DNA from: Orbicella franksi
Taxonomy: Eukaryota
Direction: 5' to 3'
Length of the DNA stretch: 64,000 bases
Assembly: GCA_964199315.1 (NCBI GenBank)
Contig: OZ116703.1
Span: forward strand, 18,538,001-18,602,000
In this document: positions 29,986 to 52,475 of the stretch, in pieces
Layout: the number at the start of each line of letters is the position of its first letter
Position numbering within the stretch: the first letter of the stretch is position 1
Notes under the pieces: generated by a model
What the model saw: only the letters and a program-made list of their open reading frames with translations
What the model was told of the DNA's origin: nothing
Database searches by the model: none
Program-made: the position numbers and the translations under genes

Positions 29986-32017
29986 AGGCAGACGACGAAC
30001 TGACCTCCACGGCAAAAAAAGGAAAAGAAAAAGAAAAAGAAAAAAGAAAGAAAGAGAAACTAAAAGCACAAAGTAACTGTCCCAATTGTAATTTCCACCA
30101 AGAATACGTTTCTATTTTGCATTTTACTCAAAACTTGTCGTTTTGGTCGGACAGCAAATGAGGAAGGCGGAGATTTCACTTTAGTGAGTTAAGACGGAAG
30201 ACTTGCCTGCCTTAACTTTACTCCGAATAACTGGCAACAAATTACGCTGAACCAAATCTTCTACACTCCACGGCATGCAAACATCACGATACGACGTCCT
30301 GTTGAAATTGGCTTATGCCTGAAGACATTTCCAGTTATTTAAAACATTGCGCGAAGAACATTTCCACATACGCTTTTTATTAGCGAGAATATAGTCATCG
30401 ACGAACTTTGCAAAATGTTGGGCTTGCACGTGACTCTAATGCTCCCAACTGATTGGAGGATCAGACTAGGTATGAAGCAGTCGAAGGAATAACTTATACC
30501 TCGTTACGTTCGATGAAGCAATTCCACTCAGCTCTGTGAGTGGTCATCCGGTTGGAAATTTGTTTCTAATGAATCAAAATTGCACGCAGCGTTGACGAAA
30601 TTGACCTTTCAGGATCTTCTGCTTCGAAGCAGTTGTATGCTCACAAAGTTCAATCTTCGGCTACTGTGGTTTGATGGTGTTATCACTGATTCCTGTCTCT
30701 TGTAAAAACAAGGCGTGGGAGTATAGGTGAAATGGGGTAAGGAGAGCATTTAAACTGTCCACCCCTTTGGATCCATTTGGCAGTATTGCTATTTTAAAAA
30801 CGTGCGAGCATGTGAAAGAAAAACCGGATGGTACGCTATATGCTATACTCTTGGAGATTAGCACAGATTTCATCGGAAGTCAACTCGTCATAACAGATGA
30901 TTATTCTATCTACTTGGCTTCTGATTTGACGAGCGTTTTGCAAAACTAATTGCAACATTCTAGAAGTCGGCATCGCAAATAGAATTTCAACTTGAAAACG
31001 CCAGAGGCAAGTGAGAGCAATTCTCTGTTAACTTTTCTGAGTAAAGGTCGCTTGGTGTATTAAGGGGGTTATCTCCCTGCTAATGACAGACTGTTTGGAA
31101 CTTTGCACCATTTACGCCGTTTTCTGTGAGAACCCTTTCACGAGATTACTTTAATATGCTCGCCCGTATCGATGTCGTATGCATTAGAGTAGTCAAAGAA
31201 CAATGGAATCTTCGGGTGTTTAATCTGTTCTTTTGAGTTGCCATTACACAGTGTTGATTGTTGACCTTTGAAAAGGGCTAAATTAATCACTTATTTGTAT
31301 GCCAAACAAAATACTTGCAAGAGCGTGGGAAAAATTGCCGAGTCAAACGACCGTGACGCAGCTGATTCGTCTGTCTTTTATTTACAACTTGTGTCAAGGA
31401 AAATAATACAACACAATGTGTATAAATGTAAGAAAAATAACAGGAAAAGGATGTATAGACATGTGCTTTCCCTTCGCGTAATAACTCTTTCGTACTCTTC
31501 ACAGATTTACGACTAAGTTCTCCTTAGTTTATTGTAATACAATCAAGCAGGCAAACTAGGAGAATGAATTCCCTGATCTGAAAATATAATTGAAGCCGGC
31601 TTAATTATTTTTAGCGGTGCCGGGTAATTGGTACCAGTGCTACCTTAACTATACATTGCCACCTTAACGATGAAAACAGTTATTTACAGGCAAATAGGTC
31701 AGTGACGATGCATTAGAAAATAGTATTCTTTGTAATCCTGCAGTCTTTGATATTGCCTCGAGGACTTAAAGGACCTCCACGTTAATACCGCCCGTTATTA
31801 TTTCAAACTACGTCACAGTACTAACGTAAAGATTGATGTTGTTTCCGTTTTCTGAACATGACGTTTACATATTAGGGCAATATACCGAAGAAAGTAAAAA
31901 GAAAATTATCAGCAGCTTGAGCGCAATTAAAAGGTCAGCTTTTTGATTGCTGTGTCTCTAGTTTTGATAAGAATACCTTTGTATACTATGGACCATGAAC
32001 TAAATTTTGTGTCTCTT

Positions 32018-32628
32018 CTAAGAGATCCCGTGCTCAACCGGAAGGCCTCCCTCGTCGTTAGAACTTCCTTGATCCTCTTCGACTTCGTTCTTCCTGACTT
32101 GCTTCAAGTAATGCTTGATCTTTTTCTTGGCTCTGAGAAGATCGGCTTCGATAAGGTGGTATTCGTAGCGACAGCATTTCTCGTAGAAAACTTTAAAAGG
32201 TTTACACTTTGGAAGCAGACGCTGGTTGATAGGGTGGCTACGACGGGTCCACACTGCTGTTTTCATTTGGTGAAAGTGCTTATCGGGAGAAATATGGTCC
32301 ACATTGGACGTATAATCACACGTTTCTCCTATTTTGGCCACTTCTCGCCCTAGATTGCAGCATTTTTCCCTTCGAGTGAGTTTTACTTTGGGGGGCTTCT
32401 CGCTTTTTGTTTCCGATGTCGAACTCTCAGTGAGGCGAGCTTTCCCGGGCTTCGAAACAAAATCTGAAAACGGTACAAAATGACTTATGTTAAATCGAGA
32501 AAGAAGTAAAGGCGTATTGCGTATAAAAATTACCAACCTTCCTCACTCCTGTTTACGACAACTGCTCCGTTTATCAGAACGTTAAAGACCACCAGAAATA
32601 GAACGCAGTAAACTGAGAATTGCTTCAT
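32018..32628 (-). CDS. Secreted protein with stand-alone anaphylatoxin-like (CC-x12-C...C-x9-CC) domain, gene A; 2 exons, 178 aa
   Basis: Exon 1 32628-32538 encodes signal peptide MKQFSVYCVLFLVVFNVLINGA-VVVNRSEE. 74-nt phase-1 GT-AG intron. Exon 2 32463-32018 encodes D..KLTRREKCCNLGREVAKIGETC..LLPKCKPFKVFYEKCCRY, a basic helix and an acidic tail. Total 537 nt, in frame. Confidence 0.8.
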
Positions 32629-35222
32629 TTTTACGGTAGTATGGTTGGCGTACTATAAACTGCGTGAGTGTCCCGTGGCAAGAGGTTTTGTTTTGAAACT
32701 GCACCCGGTAAAACCAGTTCGATATGTTGACGTTATTGTTATGGTATTAGTCACTGTGCAAAAGCAAACAAAGTGTTAAATGCCATCACTTGTCATTCAC
32801 CAACGAGAGTTAGCGTGATTGACAGCTGTAGACACAAAAGCAAGCGAGGACAATTGAGCGCACAATAGGCTTGTTTTGCTTCTAATTGGGCTATGTCGCC
32901 CCGAGGCGTCAGGGGTCTTTTTGTTTTTGCTTTCGAAAACGAAAGAACAGCTAGAAACCGAAAGCATATCACACCCTGGATTCTAGAAGATGCCAAAATG
33001 GCTCTCTCTCAGATTCAACCCATACAAAGGCTGTTGTGTGGTTGTCTTGTATCTGCTCATTAACACCTTGTTCCAGAAATCCGTGGGAATGTTTACTTTA
33101 TGTGTATGGACTAATTAACGAAAGCTTCCAAAAGAGTGCTCTAGTTTGCCGGTTTACCGGAGAATGGAAATTATACCGTTTAATCCCGGAAAAATCTAAA
33201 AATGTCATTTCTTGTATTTGGCCCGTTTGAGAGGCTAAGCCCACACAAAGCAATTTGCGGGAGGTCACGATTCTGGGGTGTGTTTCATGGCTGAAATCGA
33301 ATGCAATGTCTTAAAATTTGCCAGGCGCCGAAATGTCTACAAAACGTGACATTTATATTGCAGTGTTGGCATAAAGTTTAAAAGGGAACTTGTGTCTTTG
33401 TCGCGTACCGTTGAACACGAAGGCACATGCGCACAAAGCTTTACTGACTTTGATTGTTGGAGATAAAGATCTTGTATTTCCATTGTAGCCTCTTCCATCG
33501 TGTATACTTCATGTATAATCACTATTGTTCGTTTTTTCACAGCTCGAGTACTTGAAAGATTTAGGACTTCCGGAACAGAAGTATTTAAATATTTCAGCTA
33601 AAAGACCCTTTAAAATTCCGTTTTTATTTTGTTTTGTGTAAGCCTCAGCTGAATCCAGTGGTTTGTTGGAATGATCTTGGCAAGTTAAACTGATCAACTT
33701 AGTAAAATTTATCCGCCATCACTCTTGCTTGGAGAGCGAGGTAGGTCAGCTCACTTAACACGACCTACAATGGTTGACAAGTCCGGTGGAAGAGATGTCG
33801 AAAGTACTTGAAACCCTTGGTCTTGGACTGAAGCCATAATTAAGTGGATATGTTAGAGTACATAGTTCAAAATCAATATCTCCACAATCATATGGCATGT
33901 CGCCACCATTGTGCTGTTAATTAAATACCATTGTTATCTTTCTGTTTTCGTTCACGATGAAAGGGAAAAGCGCAGGAACTGTCTTTTAACTTTTGGTCCA
34001 CGTAGTTGTTTTTTTTTACTTTAACAAAAGGTCCAACTCAGGTTCCTGCGTGTGGTGTTCGTCACGTACCCAATTCGTAAGGTAGATTAGCTTTACAGAA
34101 GAAGATAAACAAAATGGAGCAATCACACCTTGTGGAATTTCATCCCTCGAGGTCAAAACTGATTATTACTACCGATACAATTGTTTCCAGACTGTTCTCA
34201 AACAGCTCCACTGCCTGCAGATTTGTTTGCCACCTGCCTTTATACGCAAGTTGGAATCTTCAGCATGATCCCTTCACACACGGCATGATCACATGCCCGT
34301 GCACTGCTGTGCGTGGACCAAATTTGAATCGACTCAATTTTTAATGTATTCTGTGTTTACAAATTGAATGAGATTGTTTACCGTGTTTGCCGTGGCAAAC
34401 AAGCCCCTTGATAGCAGTTATTTAGAAAGAGAAATAAAGCAGGCGGACGAATGTATCACTTACTCATTACGAAAGAATTCGGTCTATTTCGGGATGGCTG
34501 GAATTTGGGGTGCGGCGCTGTGGCTTTCTAGATGACTTTGCCTAAAGAATCCTCTCTAATTATTCAGGCGTTGATTATGAAATAAGTCGCTTGACAGGTC
34601 AAGAGTTTAAGCAACGACGCCTTCCATTGAAATTTTGAAAAATGACATTTTGTAATAAGCATGTTGTTTTGCATGAGTGCGCATGCATGAAAATGTTTTT
34701 AAACCCCAGGAGCCACCCCCTGATCCGCCTACTAGTTCCAGGTGATCATATGACAGGAGACCGGTGACCATATATTTTCCCGCCTTTTTTGACGCTCCGA
34801 CGCTCGGCAACATTTAATTTCCGTCTGCCTGGGTAATCGAAATGAGATTTGTTTCTCTTTATCACTGTTTTGTTTGACCATATCAGACGAAACGCACACC
34901 GACGCAAGGAAAGAAACAACAGGCAAGATGTTTCTCAGAAAGAAACCTTTTTCTGAATTTAAATTTCTCTTTAGTTGGCACAGATTTGATAAGCTTGGTC
35001 AGAAGCGTATCACCTCGACGAGGTGATATGCTTCTGGCTTGGTTGAATGACGAGATAAATGGTAAAGACAGCTCCATGTTGAGGCAATTTCGACGCTGAT
35101 CAAAGGTTTTAGAGAGCTCCCCCAAATAATTTAACAACTCAGGGAAGGCTTTTCTTACGACTTCTCCCGGTGAAACTGCGCCCGTACACTGCGCCATTTT
35201 GAAAGTGAAGGCAACCACAATT

Positions 35223-35278
35223 AAGAAATAGAAAACATGTACCATGTTTCTATCGAGTTATGGAAACACGAGTGGAAG

Positions 35279-35309
<31 letters not shown>

Positions 35310-35356
35310 GAGCCGCAGGCAAGTGTTTCCACAGCTTTTTCGAGTTCTCCCAAACT

Positions 35357-35390
<34 letters not shown>

Positions 35391-35400
35391 GAGAACATGT
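35223..35400. mobile_element. Palindromic MITE
   Basis: Near-perfect hairpin: acatgt..tgtttctatcgagttatggaaacacgagtggaagtttgggagaacgaga / ..ttctcccaaactttcacgagtgtttctataactcgatagaaacacggagaacatgt. Confidence 0.75.
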
Positions 35401-36811
35401 TTACACGTTTACACGTTTACACGGTTTTCTGCAAATGTTGACACGACCCAATATGGGGAAAACTTAAAACGCGGGTGCATATCTCAGGGCGTCTGAATCC
35501 TTCACATTCTGCTCAGTAACACATCTTATCTGATATCTTTATAGTATTGTAGTCAAAATTTCTAATTTAATGCAATTTATGCAAATTGTTTAATATGGAA
35601 TTCGCATTCACTCTGCATTCTCCAGTCTTATAGTTCACCACTAAATTTTCTCCGATTTCTATTGGTTTAAATTGATCGCGTGAGGCGATAATGTTCGTTA
35701 TCAGCTCATAATGCCCCTCCGAGGAAATTACCCGTATGGATAGTACTCGTCCATGAGCATTTTTTTGTAAACAAGCGGGCTTATAAAAAATAGACAACAT
35801 AAGTGGGGTTTTCAAATTTTATACTTGGCTTTAACGGCTTTCATCTAAAAAAAAAGAGTTGAAAATAATTAACCGCGCGGCCATGGGCCGAGCGCGGTTC
35901 ATGTTCTACCCGGGGCTTATTTTTTGTTTTGTTGGTGACCAGACGCAGACCTCCGCCCGCCCAAATCTCGAATAACGCAACTTATGATCTTTGTTCGCCA
36001 AAGCTGTTAAAACATTACTGTACTGCAAATTTTATGAATATTCCACTTTTTATTTAGTAAAGAATATATCGCCTTTTTATGTTATTGACGCGCTTGATTT
36101 GAAGCGAGTATTGAATACATAAAAAAGCAATTGCATCATTCATGGAATGTGTCGACGTTGCAACTTTCTCTTGGGCAGCGTGTTGATTAATATCGTGCTT
36201 GTTTGAAACTTTTATTTCGCCAGGAGCGATAAACATTGATCTAACTGTAATTTTCCGAGTATTTTTCGTATTTTTAGACAAGAGAAGTGAATTGTCGCGC
36301 TGTTTTATTGAAACGAGTTCAGAGATCGCACGGAAAATTAACTATTCGCCAGCCAAGCGAAGAACGTGTCAGAACGTGCAAGGATTACGTCATGGGTAGG
36401 GAAATAACCACCATACTAAAGATAGCCGTGGATAACGTAATTGTTGAATTATTTGACTCGTGCGACTTCTTTGCTAGCCCTTTACTCAAGGAAAAAAGAA
36501 CAACTAAATTTAATCCTGACTTTTAAGACAGAAAGCTGTTGTTAATATTGGTCGTATCCTCATGCCCATACGTATCCTGAAGAAAGTTCCAGATTAAGCT
36601 TACGTCATCGGAGATTTCACAATAGCTACGACTGATGGTGCAATAATACAGTTTGTGTTGATCGAGTGATGTGGTGTCTACAGTAATCAATGAATCATCC
36701 AGGACTGTTTTGGAATGTACACTGCATTGCGACTGTAGTGCTAAGATCTAACAGATCTTCTTGTTCAATATGATTTTTGAAGTGTCGCGCGGAAGAAATT
36801 TAGTGGTGAAC

Positions 36812-37010
36812 AATAAAGACAGTGAAGTGTTGATGTCTCGAAACTATTGGTCTGATAGTTGCCCTTGGAAATTTGATGTTCTTAAAACTAATATTTGCCC
36901 GAGAATTAAGCGAAGCTTCCAGGGCAAATATGCTAGTTTTAAGAACATCAAATTTCCGCGGGGCAACTATCAGCCAATAGTTGCTCGACAGAAACACTCT
37001 ATCGTTTACA
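36812..37010. mobile_element. Palindromic MITE
   Basis: Arms ctattggtctgatagttgcccttggaaatttgatgttcttaaaacta..atttgccc / gggcaaat..tagttttaagaacatcaaatttccgcggggcaactatcagccaatag. Confidence 0.75.
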
Positions 37011-37617
37011 TAGACTATTAGTAAGACACGTAACAGACGCCAAGAGCGGAAAAACGCGCGATTGGGAAATCACGATTTGACTTGTTTATTCCAAACTGTT
37101 TGAAAAACAGCAAGTTTACTCCAATTGATTGGATCATTTTCATCAAGGTTTTATCATAGTTAAGAGAGGAAATGGTTAAGATCTAAGAAGCAAACAAACA
37201 GGCAAAGTTTTATGTTGGAAGGTCCTTGATCCTGCACATATTTTGTGTTTTGCTCATTGGCTATGCATGAATTACATGCTTGCAATGTTTCCATTGGTTG
37301 GTTGCACAAGCACACACAACCAACTTTTGTATTTTGCCAGTTTTTTTTCGCAGACCCAGCCCTTAAAACAGCCAACAAAAACAGACAACAAAGAACTTTG
37401 CCAGGTTTCATAACCATTTCCCTCTATTAACCATGGTTTTATCTCCCAATGGAAGAACTTGAAAGGGAACACTTCCATGGAGCCAGCGCTGCAGCCAGCG
37501 CTGCAGCCCCAGGGGAGATCCTAGATGGAATCGTCCCCATGAAAGCCTCCATGGACAACGTTACTACCCTACCCTCTGCCGACTCAACGAGTTCTTCACC
37601 TGACGCTTCATGACGGC

Positions 37618-37699
37618 TAGCCTACGTGTAGCTGTACCCACCCCCCCCCCTGAGGAAAAACGTTTTTCCTCAGGGGATGGGTACGGCTACACTAGGCTA
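37618..37699. mobile_element. TAGCCT...AGGCTA-type MITE
   Basis: TIR tagcctacgtgtagctgtaccca / tgggtacggctacactaggcta with a perfect internal palindrome ccctgaggaaaaacgtttttcctcaggg. Confidence 0.7.
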
Positions 37700-37949
37700 C
37701 ATGATGGCCAATCCCAAGAGGGCCGTTTAAGTCCCAAATGTATTCCTGCTGGGTCTGTTGTGTGCTCTATCCTTTGCGGGTACATGAAACCTGCTCAACC
37801 GACTCAACTAGCTCTTCCTTCTCCTGATGCCGAATGACGGCCAAGCTAAGAAAGCAGGTCAATTTCCAAATTCAATTAAGACTGTTAAAAGCTCTAGATC
37901 CCTAATTATGTCTTCTTGGAAGCGCTGGGGGTAGGGGGTTGAGGGGAAT

Positions 37950-38530
37950 GGGGTGGTGTACTTGTCACCTCTCGCCGGCGGATCACTGAGAAACTTAGTC
38001 CTCACGCTTAATCAGCATAGAAACCGACCCCTGAGGGCTGACTCGCGATTTTGGACTACTAGTGCTTTATGCTGCATAACAGAGCGAGATACTGTATACG
38101 TGGACGTGATTTCACCCTCAAAGAAATGTAGACGATAAATATAAATCCACTAATAGTACCTCCACCTTTTCCAGTTCACGAAACGTACCTCATTTGAACT
38201 TCGTAAAATAGCAATAAGGGCGCGAAAAATTAGCCTGATCGGCAGTCATTACGTCCAGTTTTACGTCTTTTTGATAATGCTGGCAAGTTTTTCGACGATG
38301 TTTTTACCCAGCGGAGTCTGGGGAGATTGCAAGACTACTCGAGGTATGGGGGTGGCCGGAGTGGACGGGGGGAGGGAGGGAGAAAGGGAGGAACGTTGAT
38401 CACGGACAAAGCAGCTTCAAGATCGGGTCGAAAGAGTGAGCATAGATAGCTGGCCCTGCGACCAAAAGCACAGCATGTCTCAATGGAATTTAGATCGAAT
38501 TGTTTGTCAAGAAACTTGCTTTCATCCTTC
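37950..38530 (+). repeat. Interspersed repeat, copy 1 (unclassified)
   Basis: Colinear with 44720-45240; shared blocks tgtcacctctcgc, gagcgagatac..gtggacgtgat.tcaccctc, cacctccaccttt, tacctcatttgaac.tcgtaaaata, caagactactcg, gcacagcat.tctcaatggaat, agaaacttgctttcat. Confidence 0.75.
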
Positions 38531-40258
38531 GTTGTTTTCAAGAAAACATTTATGTACATGTTAACATAAATACGAAATGTAAACCTCCCTTCGCTATCAA
38601 CGAAGTCTTAATTTTTTTCCCTCTCTTTTGCTTTAATCAGGTGGTCTGCCTAGTATGGGGACTTTGTCTCTTTTGCTGACCATCCTTGTGACTATTTTAT
38701 TCTTTTATTGCTTGTATTTTCCATGTTATCTTCGCCATTAAATTGTAATAAGTAAATAAATAAATAAATAAATCAAAAATTGCTCGTTTAAAACTGAAAT
38801 AGCTTCTACAGATTTTTACAACAGTTTGCTTTTTGCGTCTGGAATCTCCATGAGTTGTTTGGTATAATTTTCAGGTAATTTGAGGACAAAAACAGCTTGT
38901 CACGAAAATCTACTCTTCCAGCTCCAAATGCTTATATGTATTCCCTCGGTTATACTCGTGAAGCCCTTATCTCTTGTTTTCCATTTGTCGTTGGTTATAT
39001 AAGTTGTTACGATCATTTTTCTGCAATATATCCATATTTTAGATCTTTTCAAAAAACGTATTATTAGTTTTCTGACGGTATAAACTATAGAGTTGGTTAA
39101 TTTTTCAATATATATCAGATTAAAAACCGAGCAGCTTTCTTGAAAATGTACGTACAAAAGGTACACCATGTACACCACTTTGCCTTTGATAGCACGGTTT
39201 GATAGGTTTCTCCAACTGACTTCTAGATCATATCCATCTTAAATATGTTAAAAGAATGTCTCTGCACTCAACAGCACGCTTTATGATTTTATACCGTTAA
39301 AAACAGAACGAGAAATAATAATCAAAAGGCACTATTAGAATTTAACTCCCTCCTAAAAGGCGAATACTGCCTGTCAATAATTATCTAATTCTACGTTAAT
39401 AATATTTATTGTGGCAGCTGCAGAAATATGCACCCCCTTCGTGACAAGAATAAAATTAAGGCAGCCTTTCCCCTTTCTTCGTCTAAAGGGCTGTAAAATG
39501 ACAGCTATCCCTTTTCTTCTCAACCACGCTGAGTTAGTGTGCTTAATGGGCACTCGTATAATGTAGTCCATCACCCGGCTCAAATGTTAGCTTCTGTTGT
39601 CAATGTATTCATTCTGTTATGCTAAACAAATGATGAAATTTGAGACGCAATACAGCTGCTCTCCGCCGCTCTGTCGAGTCCGTTCTATGTTCCTCCCCCC
39701 TCCCCACCAGCTCCTTTCCCAAACGGCGGCTAGTCATCTATCTCCATCTAAAAGTCATAACATGGCTTTTTACTTGTGTTTTGCACCATCCTCATCTCTT
39801 TATTCACAATTACGAACAAATCCTCAGTACAACTTTATGATTTACCAAGAAGGAATTTTATAATCGCTTTTACTCCTACAAAAGCACGTAAGGCGTCAAC
39901 ATACTTATAGACTAAACTGAGCGTAGCTCTTAGATGAAAACAGCTTTCGGAAAATCTCAACCGTATCGGTTTTACTTTTTTCTTGTTAAGTTCAAGGAAC
40001 TACATCACGACTTGCGCATCTTGAAAAGTTTCGCCTAAATTTTTCAAGTTCGTCATTTGTAATCCGTGTCAATCTTGTCTATCCTTCCCTCTTCCTTTAT
40101 GGTTTATTAGTATCTCTTTGATTTCTTCCGTCATAGGAACCTACTATTTTAAAGTTTCCTTCAATCTAAAGGTAATTCTGTACGCGGCCAAAATAATTTA
40201 AAATACAGTGACTGAGCTCCTTTAAAGGTATGATATAGTTCCACAAGAGTTTACTCGA

Positions 40259-41198
40259 TCAACAGCAAAGTGCTCGTCTGATTGTGTCCTTCACTGCCTG
40301 TTTTACATCGTCAATTTTCCAGCAGTAGAGAAGTGGGTTTAATGACGGGTTTAAGAAAACTAAAGTGGATGTATAACTGCCAGCGACTAAAAGTAACGAA
40401 GATGGCTCAGTGAAAATGGTCAAAGTTACCGTTATTGCATGTGGTAGATAACAAGCGACTAACGTGAACTGCAACCACAGTGCACTGGACAGTACTTTTT
40501 TGTATCGCGCTATGTTCAGTTGATTTGTTTTGCTCGGTTGCTGAACATGGTCCTGTGTTTGATGTCGCTGATGACGAAGGGTGAAGAAGATCTTCGTGTA
40601 ACAGAAGATCGAGGTTGCTGTACACAGTGAAGCAACTATAATGGCGTACCCTAAGGCTACTGGGGAAATTTAAAAATGCCTGACCGTTGAAAAGACCGTG
40701 GACACAGTCCAAAAGGAAACAATGACCAAGAAGGCACGCTTCAAAGTTACAACTTGTCTGTATCTCAGTCCTTACGACAGGGCGAGAAGTCTGTCCACGC
40801 TAATCGCAGTCAGTGTCAACGAAGAAATCGTACACAAAATAATTCCTGCTGCAGGCTGCAACTGCTCTATGGCGACAAATCTTCCAATGCCCATTCATTG
40901 CAGTCACCCACTGAGCAACAAAGAGGGGCTGTGGAATAACTCCAGTACATAGATCAGTAACTGCAAGGCTGCGAAGCAAAAGTTTGGACGGCGGATGAAG
41001 TGAAGACTCCTTGCGAAGAGCAAAGCAGATCAGAGTATTTCCAAGAAATGCAGTGACGGACGGAGAAGAGTTTAAAACTGAGACTAATGTGTACTGGCCA
41101 TGTATTCCAGCAGTTAAATCTGGTGGGCAGTAGACTTGTTCAAGCGTCGTGGCAAATAAGGTCTGGTTTTCGTCTTTAGAAACGTTTGCTGTAGCCAT
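40259..41198 (-). pseudogene. Intronless class A (rhodopsin-like) GPCR pseudogene, adenosine/melanocortin-receptor-like orphan family
   Basis: TM1 AFLGNTLI, TM2 SLAVTDLCTG, TM3 TAISVDRLLAL, ICL2 LRYRQVVT, TM6 CYLP, TM7 NPSLNPLLYCW. One frameshift at ~40850-40870 and in-frame TAA stops at 40774-40772 and 40672-40670. Confidence 0.88.
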
Positions 41199-42009
41199 TA
41201 CTCTGCAATATGACTAGCTGTATGTAGGCGCTAGCTACTGCTCTGAGCTAGAATGCCTTGATTAAAATTCATGCTTTTTAATTGTCAAAAATGTCATCCA
41301 TGAGCTATCTGATTTAGAAAAACAATTTAACTAGCCGCCCGAGCAGATGGTTTTACTGCCAAAGACAGACTTTCTACAGTTTAGCACTATTTAGTTTTGA
41401 TAAACATCGAAATAAGGGCAAAAATACAAATTTATAATCCCAACTATTGGACTCAAACCTCTTACTTTCGTACCTCCTGAGCACAAAGTATGAGTTAAGT
41501 TATTTCTTGAAAGAGGAAATTTAAGGAAACAAATTCTAATAGGGATTGATATCATGAACAGTTCAAGACAGAACAGTTTGACTTTTGTTTTAATTCTAGG
41601 AGATGATATCTTAACTTGACAGTTCTGTTCATATTTTTTCCGTGACTTTTCAAGCTATCAGAAAAATGGAATTAATGGTCGCGCATTTAATGAGTAAAAC
41701 TGTTGATCAAAAAAAATGGCATCTATTTTCTGATTTTCAGTCTCATGTCAGTCTATCATTGCAGGTTTTTCGCGAGGAGCTACAGGTATCTTACCAAATT
41801 TATTTAGTTTCAGCGAAGCTACCCCACTTCACATGATATGAACCCTAGCGAGAAGGGAGAGGTCGGCAAGACTTAAAGCTGCATTTCAGAGAACGCCATT
41901 GCTAACTTCGATGTTCTCAAGAAAGGGGCATATTAATATTAGGAAAGACCTCATTATTTGGAATTAAGTTCTCCATCTGCCCTTTCTATCAACGTTTTTC
42001 AGCATTTAA

Positions 42010-42888
42010 GGACGGTGCCTACTTTTGTTAGTGCGCACATGTTCTGCGCATCACGCAAGCATGGTTTAAGTGCCACGCGCGCGCTGGGTTGACAGTGAAG
42101 CAATCAACTACGCTACCAAGTACACGACTAAAATGAAAGCAAAGTTTTCCTACTGTGACCAAATCAAGTTTAATAAACCTGTACTTAAACCAGGAATACC
42201 AGACTAGCAGCGTATCGCTAACCACTAACTGTTAACGTCTTCAAGCTGAAAAACTAGCCGTTATCTGTCGAAAATTATACTGAAATCCAATTGTAAACAT
42301 GTACCTGCACATGGCGTAGTGCGCGCGCGAAACAAGCATGAGATACGCCATTGTTTTACTTACTAGGGAGGTGACAGGAAAAAATGTTACGGGCACCGTA
42401 AAAGTTTTCAAAAAAGATCAATAACTTTAAAAAACGCGCGGTTACCCCTACATTTTATGTTATGAAATGGAAGTGGTAAGCCTATTCAACACGTGATTAG
42501 TTTCTGATTGTGAGCAAAAGGTATTTAGACTGTATTTTAGCTGAACCAGAGGAAGGTTGTCAGAGACGCTAAAAACGCTGTGGCAACGATTTTGTTATTA
42601 AAAACATACCAAAAATGGTTTTTATGTTACCATTTACCATGTAGTTTTAAGATCTTTATAAATGTGTTTGTTTTTCTGTATATAAAGGCGAATTCTAACT
42701 ACATCTGTGAAGAAATATCCTTTCCTTCTTTTTTCAGAAAAATGCTGATGTCAGCATTTTTGTTGAGAAAAAAAATGCGTGGCTTCCCCAATTTTTCTTT
42801 GTGGATGCCAATAACCTTTACAAAGATCTACTTTTTCCGCGTGGTCCTAACCTGGCGCAAAAACCTCTGTATTTAGTAGGCACCGTCC
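42010..42888. mobile_element. Non-autonomous TTAA-inserting DNA transposon (Kolobok-like)
   Basis: Perfect 14-bp TIR GGACGGTGCCTACT / AGTAGGCACCGTCC flanked by TTAA (42006-42009) and TCAA (42889-42892). No transposase ORF. Confidence 0.7.
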
Positions 42889-43556
42889 TCAAGTGGTTGT
42901 TTCGTTTAGGTCGAAGATTCAAATTAATTTCGTGCAATTCATTGATGTGTTTTTCGTTGAAAATGACAGCTACATTCTTATCTTTTTGTAAGAATACATT
43001 TTACAAGTGTCGAACCTGAAATTTGCGAAATTTTAAGAATATTTCAAGATAAACCCTAGGCCGAGACTTTGCAAAGAATATACTTTTGTGTGTTGAACAG
43101 TTGTAAATACATTGCATTAATATGTTTCTAACCGAACCGTATAAAATTCGTCCTCTCTCTAGACCGCAAAACTTGCCAAAAACCAACAAAAACAGCCCTG
43201 CAGCCGTATGTTCGATGCTCAGTATACTGAACGTAAGGAGTTATGTGTGTCATACACACTTGTAGTTGACACCCCAATACATTCTAAGACAGAAATGTCG
43301 TACGCTATAATCTAAGAATGTTGACAGGAGTATTGTCAGCCTAAAATCGGCAGAAAAATAAGAATGCTAAGTCTACGCCGGAAAAACCATATTTTAATAA
43401 ATAAAAGAGTGTACTTTGCCAGAGCTAGTATATAGTTTCCGCAGCTTTTATCTTTCCTTGTTCATAAACAACTGGCAACTCTCATTTCATTCAAGCTGAA
43501 AAACAGATCTTTGTTTAATTTACTCTTCAATTCAACATTTGCTGTCTATATACTCT

Positions 43557-43917
43557 CCCGGGGTGGAGTTCTCCCAGAAAAATTGTGTGGGGGGTACGTA
43601 CGTGCGGCCCGCTTCCCAAAACCCTTACTCTATTGTTAAATACCAAAATCTGCAATTGTCCCAACTCTTTTATGATCTGACCAAAAATTCGAAACCCTAT
43701 CTAAGACGTGACACTTAAATCAATACACTGTTTCAGACCTGCCTTGTAATGAAAAAGTAGCTTTTTCTGAAAAAACATACCGGATTCAAGACTAGAGTGC
43801 ACTGGAAAACCATACCTTATTTGAGACCAAAATTGCTCAAAAAACATACCCTTTGGGGCCGCATATATTTATACAGCCCATTTTAAGGAGTACCCCGCTC
43901 CCACCCCCACCCCCGGG
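43557..43917. mobile_element. CCCGGGG...CCCCGGG MITE (related to the 1611-2045 element)
   Basis: Termini CCCGGGG / GGAGTACCCC..CCCCGGG. 8-bp repeat CTATATAC at 43546-43553 and 43918-43925. Confidence 0.65.
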
Positions 43918-44062
43918 CTATATACCCAACATTAGAGCAAAGAAAGCACGAGTGGACATCTACTTTAATTCCCATTTACGAACAGTTGGAAATTCTAAAG
44001 AACCTACTTCCTGGGCGCCCAATTAACAACTTATACTTGATGCTATCTTTGTTCGTATATAT

Positions 44063-44135
44063 TGAAAGTGAAGAAAGATCATCGCAGTAAATTTTCCAAC
44101 TTAAGCAACTGGAAAGAAGAAGCCTGAAAAAATCA

Positions 44136-44169
<34 letters not shown>

Positions 44170-44243
44170 GAATACCGGTGCGATTGCTTAAACTGGATTG
44201 CTTAAATTGGAAAATTGTTTGCGATGATCATTCTTCACTTTCA
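44063..44243. mobile_element. Inverted-repeat element enclosing a tRNA-derived (B-box) segment
   Basis: ~46-bp imperfect TIR (44063-44108 / 44198-44243). Interior read on minus strand is GGTCACGGGTTCGAATCCCGTTGAAGCCC, a T-arm/B-box. Confidence 0.7.
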
Positions 44244-44719
44244 TCTACAACCGCAGTTCAAATATGAATTATTTCATATATACTCTCATATATACTTTGT
44301 TCATATTCATAGATGCATTAGATATCGAAGGTTTTAGATGTGCAAATTTGCTAATAGAGTTTGAATTCAGCTTAAATAACTCGTCAAATTAAAGCAAAAG
44401 ATGGAAATCCTGAACGAAAAATTCAAACTAATTTTTCTCGTGCATGCGCTACACAGTAACAGTTCCGTCAATGGTAAAATTTAAAAACGTTCTAAAAATA
44501 TAGAAAAACACAGACATACACAAGCTTTCGACTGCCTAAACGATAGTCTTTTCTTGCATTTTTTTTCAGTGTTGGGTATCCTTTATTTCTTGGAAAAGGT
44601 CAAAGTTCTGCCAGTTTTATGAGACAGTTAAAGCTTTTACGAATTTGAGAGTCTTTAAATGCTTGTTCACAGATGTTGCCCATTTGCACACGTCCTCTCG
44701 GGGGTGGTGCGGTGTGAGT

Positions 44720-45240
44720 TGTTGCGTACCTGTCACCTCTCGCGCCTCAAGCGTTTATCTTAGACCTTCGGGTCACTAAGAAACTCTGCCTCACTCATAC
44801 TCAACAGGGAGACCGATTTATCACGGCTGACTCGTGAAGTTGGACCACTAGGGCCTTAAGCTAAACAAGAGAGCGAGATACCAGCTGTAAATGTGGACGT
44901 GATATCACCCTCGTACACTATTTACTATACATATAAAGCCACCATTATTAGCACCTCCACCTTTTACAGCTCACGAAATGTACCTCATTTGAACCTCGTA
45001 AAATAAGAGCGCGAAATAACCAACCCCATTGCGTCTAGTTATACGATTTTAGGTAATGTTGTTGGCGATTTTTGACGATTTCTTTGCCCGGCGGAGTCTT
45101 GAGAGAATACAAGACTACTCGGGATACGAGGGACACCGCAGTGGGTCAGCCCGGCGGCCAGACGCACAAATAAATCAAACACATTTATGCACAGCATCTC
45201 TCAATGGAATGTCTGTCGAGAAACTTGCTTTCATTCTTAC
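44720..45240 (+). repeat. Interspersed repeat, copy 2 (unclassified)
   Basis: Diverged colinear homolog of 37950-38530. Confidence 0.75.
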
Positions 45241-45433
45241 TTAAGTAATTTAATTTACGTGAATAAGAGAAGTAATGAACAGTTACCAAAGTCAAAGAAA
45301 GGGACAAAGTGGACACCAAACCAAAGAGATGATTGGCGCTGTTGGACCAGGAAGAGCAGGCCTTCGCCAGTCAGGCTCCCACTACTGGGTGTCACATCAC
45401 ACGAAGCCCCTAAGGTGCCCGTAAAATGGTAGT

Positions 45434-46318
45434 TGGTGAGTTGCATTTCTAGGAGAAGAAGAGGCACTGAGCAGCAGCAGCAGCAGCTGCAGCAGCTGGT
45501 CTTGCTATTGAAACAATGTGCTTAGAGTTAGAGGAGTAGTCCTAGCCCAGAGTGCTTTCCTTGCCTGCCCTGCTGGGTGCCGCTCTGGATCAGCTTGCTT
45601 ATACGACCCTTTTCTGCCTTTTTCCAACTCCCATCACTGATCTTAAGCAGTGGGGCCTTATCGAGGATGAAACCTACTAAGTCTGCTAATTGCCGTGCAG
45701 TCTTCGAGCGTATACCGTGGCTAACTTCACGAGCTCAATCAAGTGCTCAAATTTAAGCCCTTACAGAGACCAGAAAAACTCAGTGCTCATTGGCGAGTGC
45801 ACGTGCGGAACAGGCATGGGGACAAGCCCACTAACATCAAGTGCCGCCCTGTTGGAGTCCTTCTTTCTCTGATGTCATCACGAGCCACCATCTTTCATCC
45901 TAAGTTACTCACCACCACCCCTGACTGGCATGTCTCGGTTGACCATTTTGAACCCATGGTGCTGCCTGCACACAGTGCCATTACCATGCAACATTCGGCC
46001 AGGTATCATTACATGGTCAGACTTAACCGATCGTGTGTTTCTGATATTTGTAGTACTCTGGGAAAAAGAGGGAAGTTTGAGTTTTCACACGAACTCAAAC
46101 TAACCAAGTACGTCACCCTCTCAGCTGATTGTGAGAATAGAGGCTGGCCTTGAAGTGTGCTGGCCATCGAGATCATTGATCTACGATGATCCTTCTCTCT
46201 AGCCTCGGCATTGCCAAGATCCATCAAGGTATTGTTATCAAGGCTATTCAGAGTGAAGTGTAAGCTGCCAACGCTAGCTGCCACGTGCCTCTTCTTCTCC
46301 TAGAAATGCAACTCACCA
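45434..46318. mobile_element. Rearranged remnant of an RLE-type non-LTR retrotransposon (HERO-like) bounded by a 34-bp inverted repeat
   Basis: Plus strand has LNQVLK, LLTTTPDWHVSVD and HELKLTKYVTLSADCENRGW*SVLAIEI (restriction-like endonuclease C-terminus). Minus strand 45480-45690 has SWKKAEK..IQSGTQQGRQG..GLG. Perfect IR at 45434-45467 / 46285-46318. Confidence 0.6.
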
Positions 46319-49300
46319 GGCAAACGAATTGATTTACCAAGAGAAATGAGAAAAAAGATCGAACGTAACGGGTATTCTTGAACGTGTATCCGGAATTACG
46401 CAATTTGTAGGTAACTTTGTCACGAGGTCCAACTTCGATTCTTTGGACAAAGCGGGTTCATCTTTCCACAGCTTACATCTCTGCAACTGCTCCACTGTAG
46501 TTACTTTTGACATACTTGAGTTTTCCAGTAAAGCCTGAAAAACTGGAAAACGAGATAACACATCAAAAACCTCACACGACGAACACATCACCCGATCATA
46601 TGTGTGGAGACATTCTTATTTCCTTGAGAATTAGCCCTATGGTAAACGCGACCAAGGTTAAAACTGAACTGATTCCAAACATGTCTTACTGCATGACGAA
46701 AACAGTGTTTTGCCTAAAACAAGAGATGATGAAAATAGGTTGCTACATCACAATGAAAAATCACTCAGAAAAATTAAGATTTCACAGCCGAAAAAAGAAA
46801 TTTGGATCAGCGCGTTCCAAGACGTATTCACGGTCTGGACAGAAATCTCCGCCCTTACTACTGTCGGATATTTCGTCATCAGGTATGAGTTTTGTTATTT
46901 TTTCCAGCTGTTCTAAGATTTAACTTCGGCCCAGTCATACGCTGTGTTTCATATGCGTCGAACACAACTTTAATCCTTTAAACTCGCTAAAATCGTTTCA
47001 AATAAGTACAATTTCCACTCAAGTAATAATGCGCCTGTCACTAGAAACCCCACCCCTCCACCATAGAGGGAGCAAAAATTAAAAGAGAACATTGACCACA
47101 CAGACAACTACGTTAAGATAATACTACACATGCGTATAGAGGGCTATGCGTGGCTATAGAGTGCTATGTTCCACATGTCTCGCTATGTAGGACTGTATTT
47201 CCAGTAACAAGTGCATAAAGCGTACCAGTAACTAAGCAGGATGATTCTATGATCTATTACCATGTAGTCGAAATCAAGTATCAGCAGCGATGTTTCTGCG
47301 GTTTGGGTCTCACTCGACGCGACTTAAATGCGTCGTCTCAGTTAGACCTTACTTTATTCAGAGAGGTAATTTTCTTGCGAATTCATTTTACCATTTCCTC
47401 GAAGGGGGAAAACGTGCTTCAACTGGCGTACATTAATTTTACCACAATCCGACGGTGGTGTGCGCTCCTGACCAAACCAGTCGCAGTTTGAAACGTTGGC
47501 CAACTTGTGAGTTATATACTTGATGAGCAACACGTTTTTTAACAATTAGATGATCAATCACCCACTTTTCAACCCACCGCGCATTTATCGTAGGTATATT
47601 AGGCGGTATTAGTGATTCTCACAATCCGATTATTGAGTAATAAACGAATACATTAACAGGTCGGAATAAGAGTGAGGTGTTTTGGAGTGTTACTGATAAT
47701 TTTTTTTTTTCACTTTAAACTGCCTCCAGACGTGGACTAAACTCTGGTTTCGGAGTAGCCTAGGATATATTTGAGTTGTTTAAATTATCACTTTTAAAAA
47801 ATTATTGGCTTTTCCAAAACAAAATAACTGGATCCTTATATCATTTGACGTTAACTCCGTTTCGACAAGGCAAACGTCAGAGAAAGTAGTCTATACGCCT
47901 GGCCTTGACTGGCCTCTGGCCTCTGTAAGGTTTTCCGCTTTAGATAAGCTGGCATTCCAATAGCTTCAAGGCTGTAGCCGGAAACCCAGAAAGGATTGAT
48001 TTTCTCATACCGACTTTGAACGTGTGATGCGGAAGTTTGAAGAAGGAAGTGTTAACTCATTAAGGAAGTCAAATCTATAGTAAAGAGACATGCAGATTGT
48101 TTCAGCATTCCAGTGTGACGCTCGAAGAAGCTTAGCTTCTAATTTCCAAATTTTACCTTTTCATTTTCTATGTTGGTAGGCATACCCTTTTCCTGATCTA
48201 ACAGATTTGACCTAGATTCAGGTTATACTGAACAGGGGGTCATGAAATCCGTTGTAAAAATTGGAGACTTTCCCTACCCAAACATTTGAAACAATAGCCA
48301 TAGGCGAATTTTGTCAAAGGCTGCAGTCAGAAAAATTAACACTGATTCATTTGGATTTATTTTATTCACAAGTGGATCTCAACCGGAGCCAACTTCCTCA
48401 GCCAGGTTACATGAGAGAGAAGACCGTACTTTGCTCATCCAGAACTGTCACGTGGTCTTGTAGGGCAGTAGCTGCTAGAGATAATAATTGGTGCGTCACG
48501 AAATCTTAGAACAAAGCTTGCGTGACGAGTCAATGGAACACATCACTTCAGTGGTCGCGGGTTTCACAATACAGCAAGACCCTCTTTCAAAAGTCAGCAG
48601 TTGCTAAGTGTACTTTAGAAAGCCTATAGCTGTTGTTCTCTGATGTTCGATTATGTTCATATGGATTGCCGTTAATAAGTACGAGTGATTATTGACTCTG
48701 ACAAACTGGTAATAGGATTTATTTTAAATTACCTTTAATCCAATTTACACTTAAAATATTTTTGTCTTTCAATGTGACTTTATAGTAGTATGATCCATGC
48801 TCGGGATACTTTTCACAGCTAAGACTTCTATAAAACAATATCGTTATTGACCTCGAGGAGTGCAACCTGATTGGCTAGGCGTACACCATATATCTCTAAA
48901 GCGCGCGTAACCAATTGCAAAAAAATACCTGGGTAATTACTTTTTCTCTATCTTTAAAACGTGCCTCTTACAAAAAAGATGCCTTAGCTTGTTAGAAAGA
49001 ACTGTGGCTTATGCTTTATCCTGTTAAATGAATAAGACTTTCTGAAAGTGTTTCCTGACGAATTCAACAACAGCCTTGGAGCCTCGTTCAGTTGCTGTTG
49101 TGCATCAGTCGATACTTATGTAAGTGTGCTTATTTCAGAAACCGCGTGTCAATATTTGGTACCCAGAAAAGCGAATCACATGTGTAGCCTGAGTACCCGT
49201 GCCAACCACTTGACTCTGCGTGCAGACGTTAACTTCCTTCCTGCACGAAAAAATCTTACGCAAGAACCACTTGAACAAAGAGGGGACAAATTGTAAGGCA

Positions 49301-49584
49301 GAAATATCGGAGCGAATCTTAATTAACTTTCGATTTTCAACACAGGAAGGATATTCGACTTTAAAATTCGGGCTACCTCCGAGTTAATAGCATTTATTTT
49401 TTTACGAGGTATGTCACTACAGTTTTTTTCTTGGTCCTTAATTAACCTATCTTTCTCCAGTCAAAAAAAAGTGTGACACAAGGTAGCGTTGTGATTCGAT
49501 TTTGTACAGGAGGTGCTTATTATATTGTGGGTGCCCTAGAAACAGAAAGAGAGAGCATTTTATATTCGGGGACTGGGGCTCGTG

Positions 49585-49587
49585 CAT

Positions 49588-49626
<39 letters not shown>

Positions 49627-49630
49627 TTTT
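49585..49630. repeat. (TTTA)n microsatellite
   Basis: About 11 TTTA units. Confidence 0.9.
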
Positions 49631-51246
49631 CAACTTTTCTGCAGTTATCCAGTTTCAACTGCCTTCGTCTGGCTGCAACATTTCCTTGAAAACAAATCGT
49701 TCTCAAAACTAAGCTTATCTCGGTATATTCTGAGTATTTATCAGTATTGGACGTGGGCAGATATATTGTGTATGCCATGGAGCGCTCGATTCTTTTGAAA
49801 AAGGGGGCGTGGGCGCTAAAACAAATCTGTTCGCTTGAACGACTGCAACCGGAGACCATAAAACAAAGTCGATTCTCTTTGTATAAGTCATCTAATCGCT
49901 CAATTCACAAGTTTCATCGGTCGTTAACTTGCACTCTCAATTTTTTTATTGCATGCGGATGTTTTGCCTTGTTGATTGCCACAGTAATTGCTTTTAAGAC
50001 ACTCAGAACGGATTGCATGCAGTTTTATGCGTCTAAATGCACTTAAGATCTACTTGAAACTAGAAGTACAATATTCCAGCACACAAATTTCCTTTTTCCA
50101 AGCTCCTTTTACTCCCATGATAAGTTATTCTTTGCACTTATTACCATGTTACCTCTTGAATCTGGTTATAAAAATTTGGCAGTGCAACGTTCTTAAGTTA
50201 ACGACTGTCTTTGCATTCGTTACTTGTCTTCGCTGGTATGGGATATGGGCAAGCCTAAATGCAATCTAGAGCTTAACAAGTCAATATTGGCGCGTTCAAT
50301 AACAATAACAGTTTCTTTGATCGCGTGATAAGTAATTCATCGGCTCAGTATAATCATGCTAAATGGACAGTATATGAACATCTGAGCTCCGCCCACCACT
50401 TAAAATCCACTTTGCTCCTCGCCCTCATGCAAATGACTTTTAACACATCATTATCGCATTTCGAGCTGGACGGAGTACCGTGGTATAAACTACAGTAGAC
50501 TGCTGTTCACGTGTTTCATTGCTGCTGATACATTTATTTCACTCATCATTCACAAAGTTGTGCGATACTGACAGCTCGCAGTACAAACCTACCTACATGT
50601 TATTAAGTGTTTTTGCCATCATTATCCTGCAAAATTGACAGGAGGACTATTCAAATTAGCAACAATTATTTTGTTCGCTTTGTGAAGAGCTTATTGCCTC
50701 CGGGAAAGAGCTAAAGTTTCAGTTTCTTTCAAGTGGTTTGTAAATTCTACTGAACTCATTTGCAGGGAAATGAGAGTTTTCCTGTACTTATGACGTTTTT
50801 CTACCGCCGCTATATAGCGATATACATTTCCAAAATCTTTTTTTAGAAAAATTATACCATTTTTTTGTTTTCGAGAGCAAATGTCAGTCTGCGAAGACAG
50901 GCAATACTAAGATGCCAGACATTCCTCTGAACAAAAAAAGTTGATCGATGGAAGCCTCGTGGCATTTGAATTACAAATACCTTAAATACTATGTCATTCT
51001 GATTACTTTTTGAATAAACTACTTTGAAAATTACTCTCACTATTGCATGGTAAACACCGGCCTCGAATCGGCACTGTAATGGGCCAGTCGCAACACCATT
51101 TTAAAATGCCTTTTTGCAAGATTCTGATGGTTCTTGCGTAACTATCTATTTTTAACGTCTTTAAAATATATTTACAAAATACGCTTTTATGTTATCTAGT
51201 GTTGATCATAAGCCATAGACCTGGGATATTTTTTCTTTTACTTTGC

Positions 51247-52475
51247 TCACGGAGTTTGCTTTTTCCTCTGGGCTGTTGTTTTTGTCCGTGCCTGCTCCTC
51301 ACGTTGTTTCCTCTCGCAGCAATCTTGAAAGCAACGCTTTTGCTCCGTGCCCTGAGACTCGCATAACTTCAGCCTCCAGCGAAATCCGTACGACATACGA
51401 AGCGAATTGGCAGCATCCATTCTGTCCGTTTGCCCATCGCTGGACTTAAGCGATAGCCGATGGCTTGCGGATGTGTGGTATTTTAATCCTTGCGACAGGG
51501 CTTCGATTTTGCACGTGTATACTGAAGCCGTGTAGGACAGACGAACGGCTTTTCTACCCAGTCTGCAGCATAAAGCGGTATGTTGACAGGCTACAGACGA
51601 CTGTTTATCTACCAGGAAAGAAGAGGAAGCAATATAAGGCAAATCTGTTGTAAACGCTAGTCGAAATATTCGTAACTGTTTTAAGTCCAAACGCTGATTT
51701 TTACAGTGCTAAAACCTTTCTCAATCGATTAGTTAGCCGTAAAAACTGTAAAATTACACTGTAAGAAAGCCAGCCAAAACATCAGGCATATGCATATCGA
51801 ACAATACTGAAGGAACTCGACGAATTTGATCAAATTGAGAACGGTACTTTAGAGTCATAAATCAAGGAAAACCACAAGCAAGAGATATTAATCTTAGTGC
51901 TACAGGATAAATTGTACACGTACGCCGCCTTCTCGGAATAAACTAATTTTCCGCCTTTCTTTGACTTCCTTTGAAATGGCGTTCGAACCACTTGCTACCA
52001 AACACACAATAAAACGAAACTTATAGTATATTTAGAGTATTGTGGGCATCTTGTGACTTGTCTGCCATACTTTGCAGTATTATATCGGAAGCGATAAGAA
52101 AACATTAAACAGTTGAACAATTCTCGTCTTAGCTAGCAGACATGACTTGTTTTCCTATAGCAATTTTCATCAGAATGGCTCTCAGTTTTTCTAACTACCT
52201 GGCACAACGCAGCAATATTAGCTATATATTACGCCATTACTTTGTTAGCTGCTGGAAAGGGTTGTGAATAATTCCTTTAATGACAAGACACGTTTGGACA
52301 CATGCACAAAGTGATCATGCACAGAACAGATGAAGGTCCTCGTACCTTGGTTCTGCCCTGTCGCCTCAGCAATTGCATTGCTGCTGCCGTTTTGCGTTGA
52401 AAAGTTCCCGTTGCCAGCCGAAGCGACCACAAGTAAACTTAGAAGTTCAATTACAAAAAGAGTGACTCGATCCAT
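51247..52475 (-). CDS. Secreted protein with stand-alone anaphylatoxin-like domain, gene B; 2 exons, 163 aa
   Basis: Exon 1 52475-52346 encodes signal peptide MDRVTLFVIELLSLLVVASA-GNGNFSTQ... Phase-1 intron (gtacga..cttcctggtag). Exon 2 51608-51247 encodes DKQSSVACQHTALCCRLGRKAV..TC..LKLCESQGTEQKRCFQDCCERKQRE... Total 492 nt, in frame. Confidence 0.8.

Follow-up and report, generated by a model that had tools for sequence, protein, structure and literature searches.

The 64,000-nucleotide stretch of Orbicella franksi DNA analyzed here (contig OZ116703.1 of assembly GCA_964199315.1, positions 18,538,001–18,602,000; hereafter "the window") carries two small genes, A and B, on the same strand and 19 kb apart (Table 1). 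Both are real, intact, transcribed two-exon genes built to one plan: exon 1, which encodes a predicted hydrophobic signal peptide, ends on the codon base G, a phase-1 intron follows, and exon 2 opens with AT, giving a split Asp codon. An initial annotation of this DNA had described that common plan and strand, and both were confirmed by the gene models, together with RNA contigs for A and a match to an Orbicella faveolata gene model for B.

When RNA contigs from four runs (three studies) were mapped onto positions 31800–32800, the gene A junction 32463|32538 was seen in each run, and all contigs skipped 32464–32537. The spliced contigs reach ∼32654–32691 at their 5′ end, and the 3′ untranslated region continues past 31800. 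Exon 2 of gene A is present in 19 public runs from 8 studies (10 of the 19 on record as RNA) and exon 2 of gene B in 20 runs from 10 studies (8 of the 20 on record as RNA). The model of gene B agrees with the NCBI model of O. faveolata LOC110046586 (P0019), with identical exon-1 sequence and splice junction and 97% identity across exon 2. In Pocillopora meandrina, the A ortholog is a gene of 639 bp at genomic locus L005, whereas two Logan contigs (L006 and L007) carry a continuous 561-bp frame with the same 186-residue product; the A intron is therefore removed in this species as well. One further contig from an RNA run, 2344 nt long, starts at 32639, overlaps the 5′ end of gene A and extends upstream beyond 32800; since the contigs carry no strand information, it could be a neighboring or a divergent transcript.

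Table 1. Features of genes A and B, in positions counted from the first nucleotide of the window
Feature	Position	Strand	Description
Gene A	32018–32628	minus	two exons, 178 residues, ATG at 32628
Gene A exon 1 (coding)	32538–32628	minus	start codon, predicted signal peptide (residues ∼1–22), conserved N-x-S site
Gene A intron	32464–32537	minus	74 bp, GT..AG, phase 1; spliced out in RNA contigs
Gene A exon 2 (coding, including stop)	32018–32463	minus	variable pro-region, then a dibasic site (mostly conserved), the Cys domain, a basic helix and an acidic tail
Gene A six-Cys domain, CC..C..C..CC	32171–32362	minus	the 37 residues separating Cys3 from Cys4 are conserved
Gene A basic amphipathic helix after the domain	32072–32170	minus	from AlphaFold2 model and charge
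Gene B	51247–52475	minus	two exons, 163 residues, ATG at 52475
Gene B exon 1 (coding)	52346–52475	minus	start codon, predicted signal peptide, two N-x-S/T sites; same sequence as P0019
Gene B intron	51609–52345	minus	737 bp, GT..AG, phase 1; junction shared with P0019 and with full-length contigs of orthologs
Gene B exon 2 (coding, including stop)	51247–51608	minus	seen in RNA runs
Gene B eight-Cys domain, C..CC..C..C..C..CC	51316–51588	minus	predicted all-helical
Gene B basic C-terminal helix and tail	51250–51315	minus	from predicted model and charge

The six cysteines of protein A lie at residues 65, 66, 79, 117, 127, and 128 (CC-x13-C-x37-C-x9-CC), and the eight of protein B are spaced as C-x5-CC-x17-C-x49-C-x9-C-x3-CC. 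Both domains start with CCxLGR (CCNLGREVAK for A, CCRLGRKAVR for B), a basic helix comes after each, and the mature domains each have a charge of +8 and an isoelectric point of about 9.3. This skeleton and helix, already noted in the initial annotation, are real in both proteins, as judged from the cysteine patterns, the structural models and the charge. The tail is acidic and conserved in A and basic in B, and the proteins end in GIS and QTP, respectively, with no C-terminal Arg. In most A members, a dibasic pair lies two residues ahead of the first CC, downstream of a variable spacer. Combining joint and wide alignments, hhalign and a tree, we define a family signature that both proteins carry: a signal peptide, a CCxLG[RK]xxA[KR] opening, Y-T near Cys3, a conserved His and Met, R-L before Cys4, an [FY]-x-x-CC end, and the basic helix after the domain.

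From these sequences, A and B are very probably ancient paralogs. Their pairwise identity over the core is only ∼24%, a BLASTP comparison aligned just the CCxLGR region (E-value 1e-4), and hhalign applied to narrow A and B alignments returned a probability of 46.8% (E-value 2e-4). With alignments widened by divergent members of each family and trimmed to the core (A4 for family A and A5 for family B), the hhalign probability was 89.1% (E-value 2.3e-6) and the score 38.7, over 72 columns running from the first CC to the last. As a null we shuffled the columns of A5 200 times with all Cys columns kept, and also reversed the alignment; the highest shuffle score was 20.9 and the reversed alignment scored 18.7, so that the similarity between the A and B profiles is above chance. 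The positions common to both families beyond the cysteines comprise the Leu and Gly after the first CC, Arg/Lys, Ala, Y-T by Cys3, His, Met, and the R-L before Cys4. Cross-family tblastn matches also occur among divergent members, e.g. P0053 against the A gene of locus L020 (E-value 1e-4).

Linkage of the two genes recurs in two distant genomes. At L019, where the A- and B-like genes are 58% and 54% identical to those of the window, the B-like exon is located 9.9 kb upstream of its A-like counterpart on the same strand, an arrangement like that of the window; at L020, with identities of 44% and 37%, the two genes are 9.5 kb apart on opposite strands. In a maximum-likelihood tree, all A-like sequences are separated from all B-like sequences by one very long branch with 100/100 support. 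Because sequences from both L019 and L020 fall in each of the two clades, the duplication is older than the split of these taxa. The suggestion in the initial annotation that A and B are old, divergent paralogs is thus upheld. The pair would have arisen from a single ancient tandem duplication within a lineage-restricted family, after which purifying selection has acted on both families and the genes have remained linked.

The same annotation expected fast divergence, as in ligand or defense families; what we found is constraint. The ratio of nonsynonymous to synonymous substitution rates (dN/dS) of A against three orthologs is 0.13–0.20, and B compared with L009 gives a dN of 0.18 with dS saturated. 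Long runs of non-Cys residues in the Cys3–Cys4 stretches are nearly invariant within each family, as are the core motifs, and the tree places the A–B divergence on the old branch between the families. At the level of sequence, the pattern is one of slow evolution under purifying selection following an old split. Slow evolution, together with the single-copy state of both genes, argues against a fast-evolving defense family, and the defense-system reading proposed initially is not supported.

A and B are each single-copy in this 497-Mb assembly, as established by genome searches; weak matches of the B profile in the same genome (contig C4, E-values 0.06 and 0.4) were set aside as apparent repeat noise. 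Homologs of A share 54–96% identity and include a P. meandrina protein and Stylophora pistillata LOC111340393, and those of B share 57–97%, the highest value being that of O. faveolata LOC110046586. Across 1.84 billion representative proteins, a joint A and B profile (A3) yielded only 19 matches at an E-value ≤ 0.001. Members added by profile search, all from ENA, JGI, or Logan assemblies, are A-like (P0050, P0051, P0052, P0054, P0055, and P0058) or B-like (P0049, P0053, P0056, and P0057). Every relative with an NCBI or UniRef name is from a stony coral, and no match is named from any other cnidarian. The earlier attribution to cnidarians at large was too broad. Pfam returned no match for the window A and B proteins at an E-value ≤ 10, the relatives that we found are likewise without Pfam domains or functional names, and searches of the literature by locus name, motif string, and sample accession found nothing on the family. 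The description of an uncharacterized family with predicted secretion therefore holds: A and B belong to an undescribed family of narrow distribution, with members in stony corals and in some more divergent relatives.

With a family alignment, AlphaFold2 predicts B as all-helical, with a predicted local distance difference test (pLDDT) score of 72 and a predicted template modeling (pTM) score of 0.63. The helix that follows the domain of A is confidently predicted; AlphaFold2 helix H84-130 starts inside the Cys domain and reaches a pLDDT of up to 92 in the segment encoded at 32072–32170. Searching the PDB by sequence with four family profiles gave chance matches only (CGH-1, CHCHD5, and a designed protein, with E-values of 0.3–0.7), and an ESM Atlas feature search with A and with P0019 gave no usable match. 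Complex prediction for the A and B cores scored 0.01, with each core's own fold uncertain, and counts neither for nor against a heterodimer. The neighbors of the B model with the highest probability (0.72, non-significant) are the AFDB clusters A0A6P4ZTL3 and A0A6P5A5L8, of 162 and 176 residues; one is named "Uncharacterized protein LOC109485571" and the other "PDZ domain-containing protein 8-like".

In the architecture that we propose for A and B, a signal peptide and a spacer of low conservation precede a basic domain, all-helical and ∼65–90 residues long. Its cysteines, six in A and eight in B, would brace it in the order CC..C..C..CC, and a basic helix would follow. The products may be helical ligands of hormone or cytokine type, secreted and stapled by disulfides, and each may bind a conserved partner; A may be freed from a pro-form at its mostly conserved dibasic site. 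A conserved ligand with specific partners fits better than an antimicrobial or matrix protein because of the secretion signals, the Cys-braced helices and the single-copy orthology, and also because of the strong constraint between the cysteines and the long-kept linkage of the paralogs. As an overall explanation, ancient, linked, single-copy paralogs of a lineage-restricted family that encode putative secreted ligands is the account towards which we lean. The ligand function taken by itself is plausible at somewhat less than even odds. That the two would form a co-inherited ligand pair, perhaps as remote derivatives of the anaphylatoxin domain (ANATO) with a new insert, with receptors of their own or acting jointly as an undescribed signaling axis of stony corals and their closest relatives, is a speculative extension that we consider doubtful.

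Several observations weigh against the ligand account. Secretion, disulfide pairing, processing, and ligand function are all predictions. The AlphaFold2 model of A is poor overall (pLDDT 56), and P0052 is without a dibasic site ahead of its A domain. The B model resembles nothing beyond generic helical bundles in searches of the PDB with Foldseek, of Swiss-Prot AFDB, of AFDB clusters and of the Atlas, or with VIA-align wide: the best Foldseek E-value exceeds 0.9, and the best VIA Z-score, 5.8, is no higher than the noise seen for helical bundles. "Cytokine-like" is therefore a description of shape only. Close linkage is also not universal. No B gene was found up to 10 kb from A at L005 (Pocillopora) or L010, no A gene up to 10 kb from B at L009, L017, or L018, and no partner within the same distance at L021 or L024–L035; at L011, from a near relative, a spacing of 19 kb as in the window would exceed the flank examined. 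The synteny expected of a paralog cluster is thus seen at L019 and L020 and absent within 10 kb at several other loci. The most divergent members, moreover, carry no taxon label, and the stony-coral scope applies to the named members.

Among other explanations, the least improbable is the one raised by the initial annotation, that the genes encode an anaphylatoxin-like product. ANATO is defined by six conserved cysteines, and anaphylatoxins are cut from a C3-like precursor by a convertase and carry a C-terminal Arg (PMC8960428). The family would then consist of stand-alone derivatives of an ANATO domain like those of complement C3 or fibulin that gained a long, conserved Cys3–Cys4 insert and act as complement-independent inflammatory or chemotactic mediators. 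The cysteine order of A is exactly that of the six-Cys definition (PMC8960428), B has the same order plus one extra pair, and ANATO (PF01821) is the Pfam model that matches the most A members. These are, however, only 3 of 16, all of them divergent, at 12.4–14.6 bits against a gathering cut-off of 21.4 (best E-value 0.063) and limited to profile positions 1–20 of 36; no B member was matched, and the window genes are not among the ANATO matches of the genome. A six-frame search of this genome found one ANATO match above the Pfam cut-off, a fibulin-like gene (G000:C9:30996414-30997336; L012, L022/L023) with at least two ANATO-type exons that start CCSKGRLKAK and CCSLGIKAK, and picked up no C3-type ANATO. 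These openings are close to those of A and B, but hhalign of A4 and A5 against the two fibulin-like domains scored 13.7 and 15.7, inside the shuffle range (a weak comparison, made with a poor two-sequence alignment). Profiles A1, A2, A4, and A5 recovered no C3a, C5a, or fibulin chain from the PDB at an E-value ≤ 10, and fold searches with the B model (PDB Foldseek, VIA-align wide, AFDB, and Atlas) returned no anaphylatoxin. C3a and C5a fold as a four-helix bundle with three disulfides; the B model is all-helical. The Cys3–Cys4 spacing is 37 in A and 49 in B compared with 20–21 in the coral fibulin-like domains, few parts of either family are as well conserved as this stretch, and the C-terminal Arg is missing. 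An ANATO derivation is thus unlikely. A and B are not demonstrable anaphylatoxins: the label goes back to the Cys pattern and the CCxLG motif, and the family at most resembles an ANATO-type disulfide-braced helical module, without being assignable as an ANATO member.

A defensive role of another kind, as cationic antimicrobial host-defense proteins whose basic helices attack microbial membranes, would suit small, Cys-braced, basic proteins with predicted secretion. Antimicrobial families are usually multi-copy and fast-evolving, however, and the single-copy state of A and B, their low dN/dS, the long invariant stretches across corals and the conserved acidic tail of A make this role improbable. 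We rate even lower the prospect that they are structural proteins of calcifying corals, located in the extracellular matrix or associated with the skeleton. The stony-coral origin of all named members and the acidic tail of A would agree with such a role, but the proteins are mostly basic, have no repeats or long acidic runs, form small globular helical domains in prediction and matched nothing in the literature search, and the divergent members may derive from non-calcifying relatives. Least probable of all is that A and B are unrelated, having converged on a helix stapled by disulfides and become neighbors by chance. The low pairwise identity and the first hhalign result would allow this, and a phase-1 intron following the signal peptide is frequent in secreted proteins; against it stand the score obtained with the widened alignments, which exceeds every shuffle in which the Cys columns were kept, the shared non-Cys positions, and the linkage repeated in two distant genomes.

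The sequence between A and B contains further elements. A rhodopsin-type G-protein-coupled receptor (GPCR) at 40259–41198 (minus strand), with Pfam 7tm_1 matches at its N- and C-terminal ends, is probably a pseudogene, because its frame is shifted once, near 40880, and interrupted by two in-frame stops; no counterpart was found in the interval separating the A- and B-like genes at L019 or at L020. A dispersed repeat is present in two copies (37934–38560 and 44702–45320), 74–89% identical and spaced by ∼6.78 kb. The minus-strand open reading frames (ORFs) at 38335–38559 and 45185–45319, which contain "CCAFGRR" and "ERCCA", are parts of these copies and were rejected as family members. Two small minus-strand ORFs at 37160–37417 and 34883–35245 have signal-peptide-like N-termini; the former is Cys-rich, and Pfam found no match for ORF 34886–35245.

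Many secreted proteins of corals are taxon-restricted, yet few combine a single copy, strong conservation, and expression with linkage to a paralog that has lasted across deep divergences. As such a case, A and B make a good candidate for a so far undescribed ligand system, which could act in development, tissue homeostasis, symbiosis, or calcification, and the weak "anaphylatoxin" label is corrected here before it spreads into annotation.

Compared with the ANATO domains of C3/C4/C5 and fibulins, A and B are likewise small, basic, helical, and (by prediction) extracellular, with the CC..C..C..CC order, a CC-x-x-G opening that leads into a basic or Ala-rich helix, and a hydrophobic or aromatic residue three to four positions ahead of the last CC. 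Known ANATO domains, however, are modules of ∼36 positions within large proteins, freed by proteolysis and ending in Arg (PMC8960428), whereas A and B each come from an independent two-exon gene that encodes its own signal peptide, and they have a conserved Cys3–Cys4 segment of 37–49 residues; B has eight cysteines, and the family falls under the Pfam cut-off with no detectable fold match. The fibulin-like ANATO repeats of this coral resemble A and B in their opening motifs and differ in their shorter Cys3–Cys4 segment, in being part of a multi-domain gene and in a profile comparison that does not rise above shuffles. Although A and B match no helical cytokine or hormone family by sequence or structure, they have in common with these systems a signal peptide, a compact helical bundle (as predicted) and putative disulfide staples, as well as orthologs that are single-copy and under strong purifying selection.

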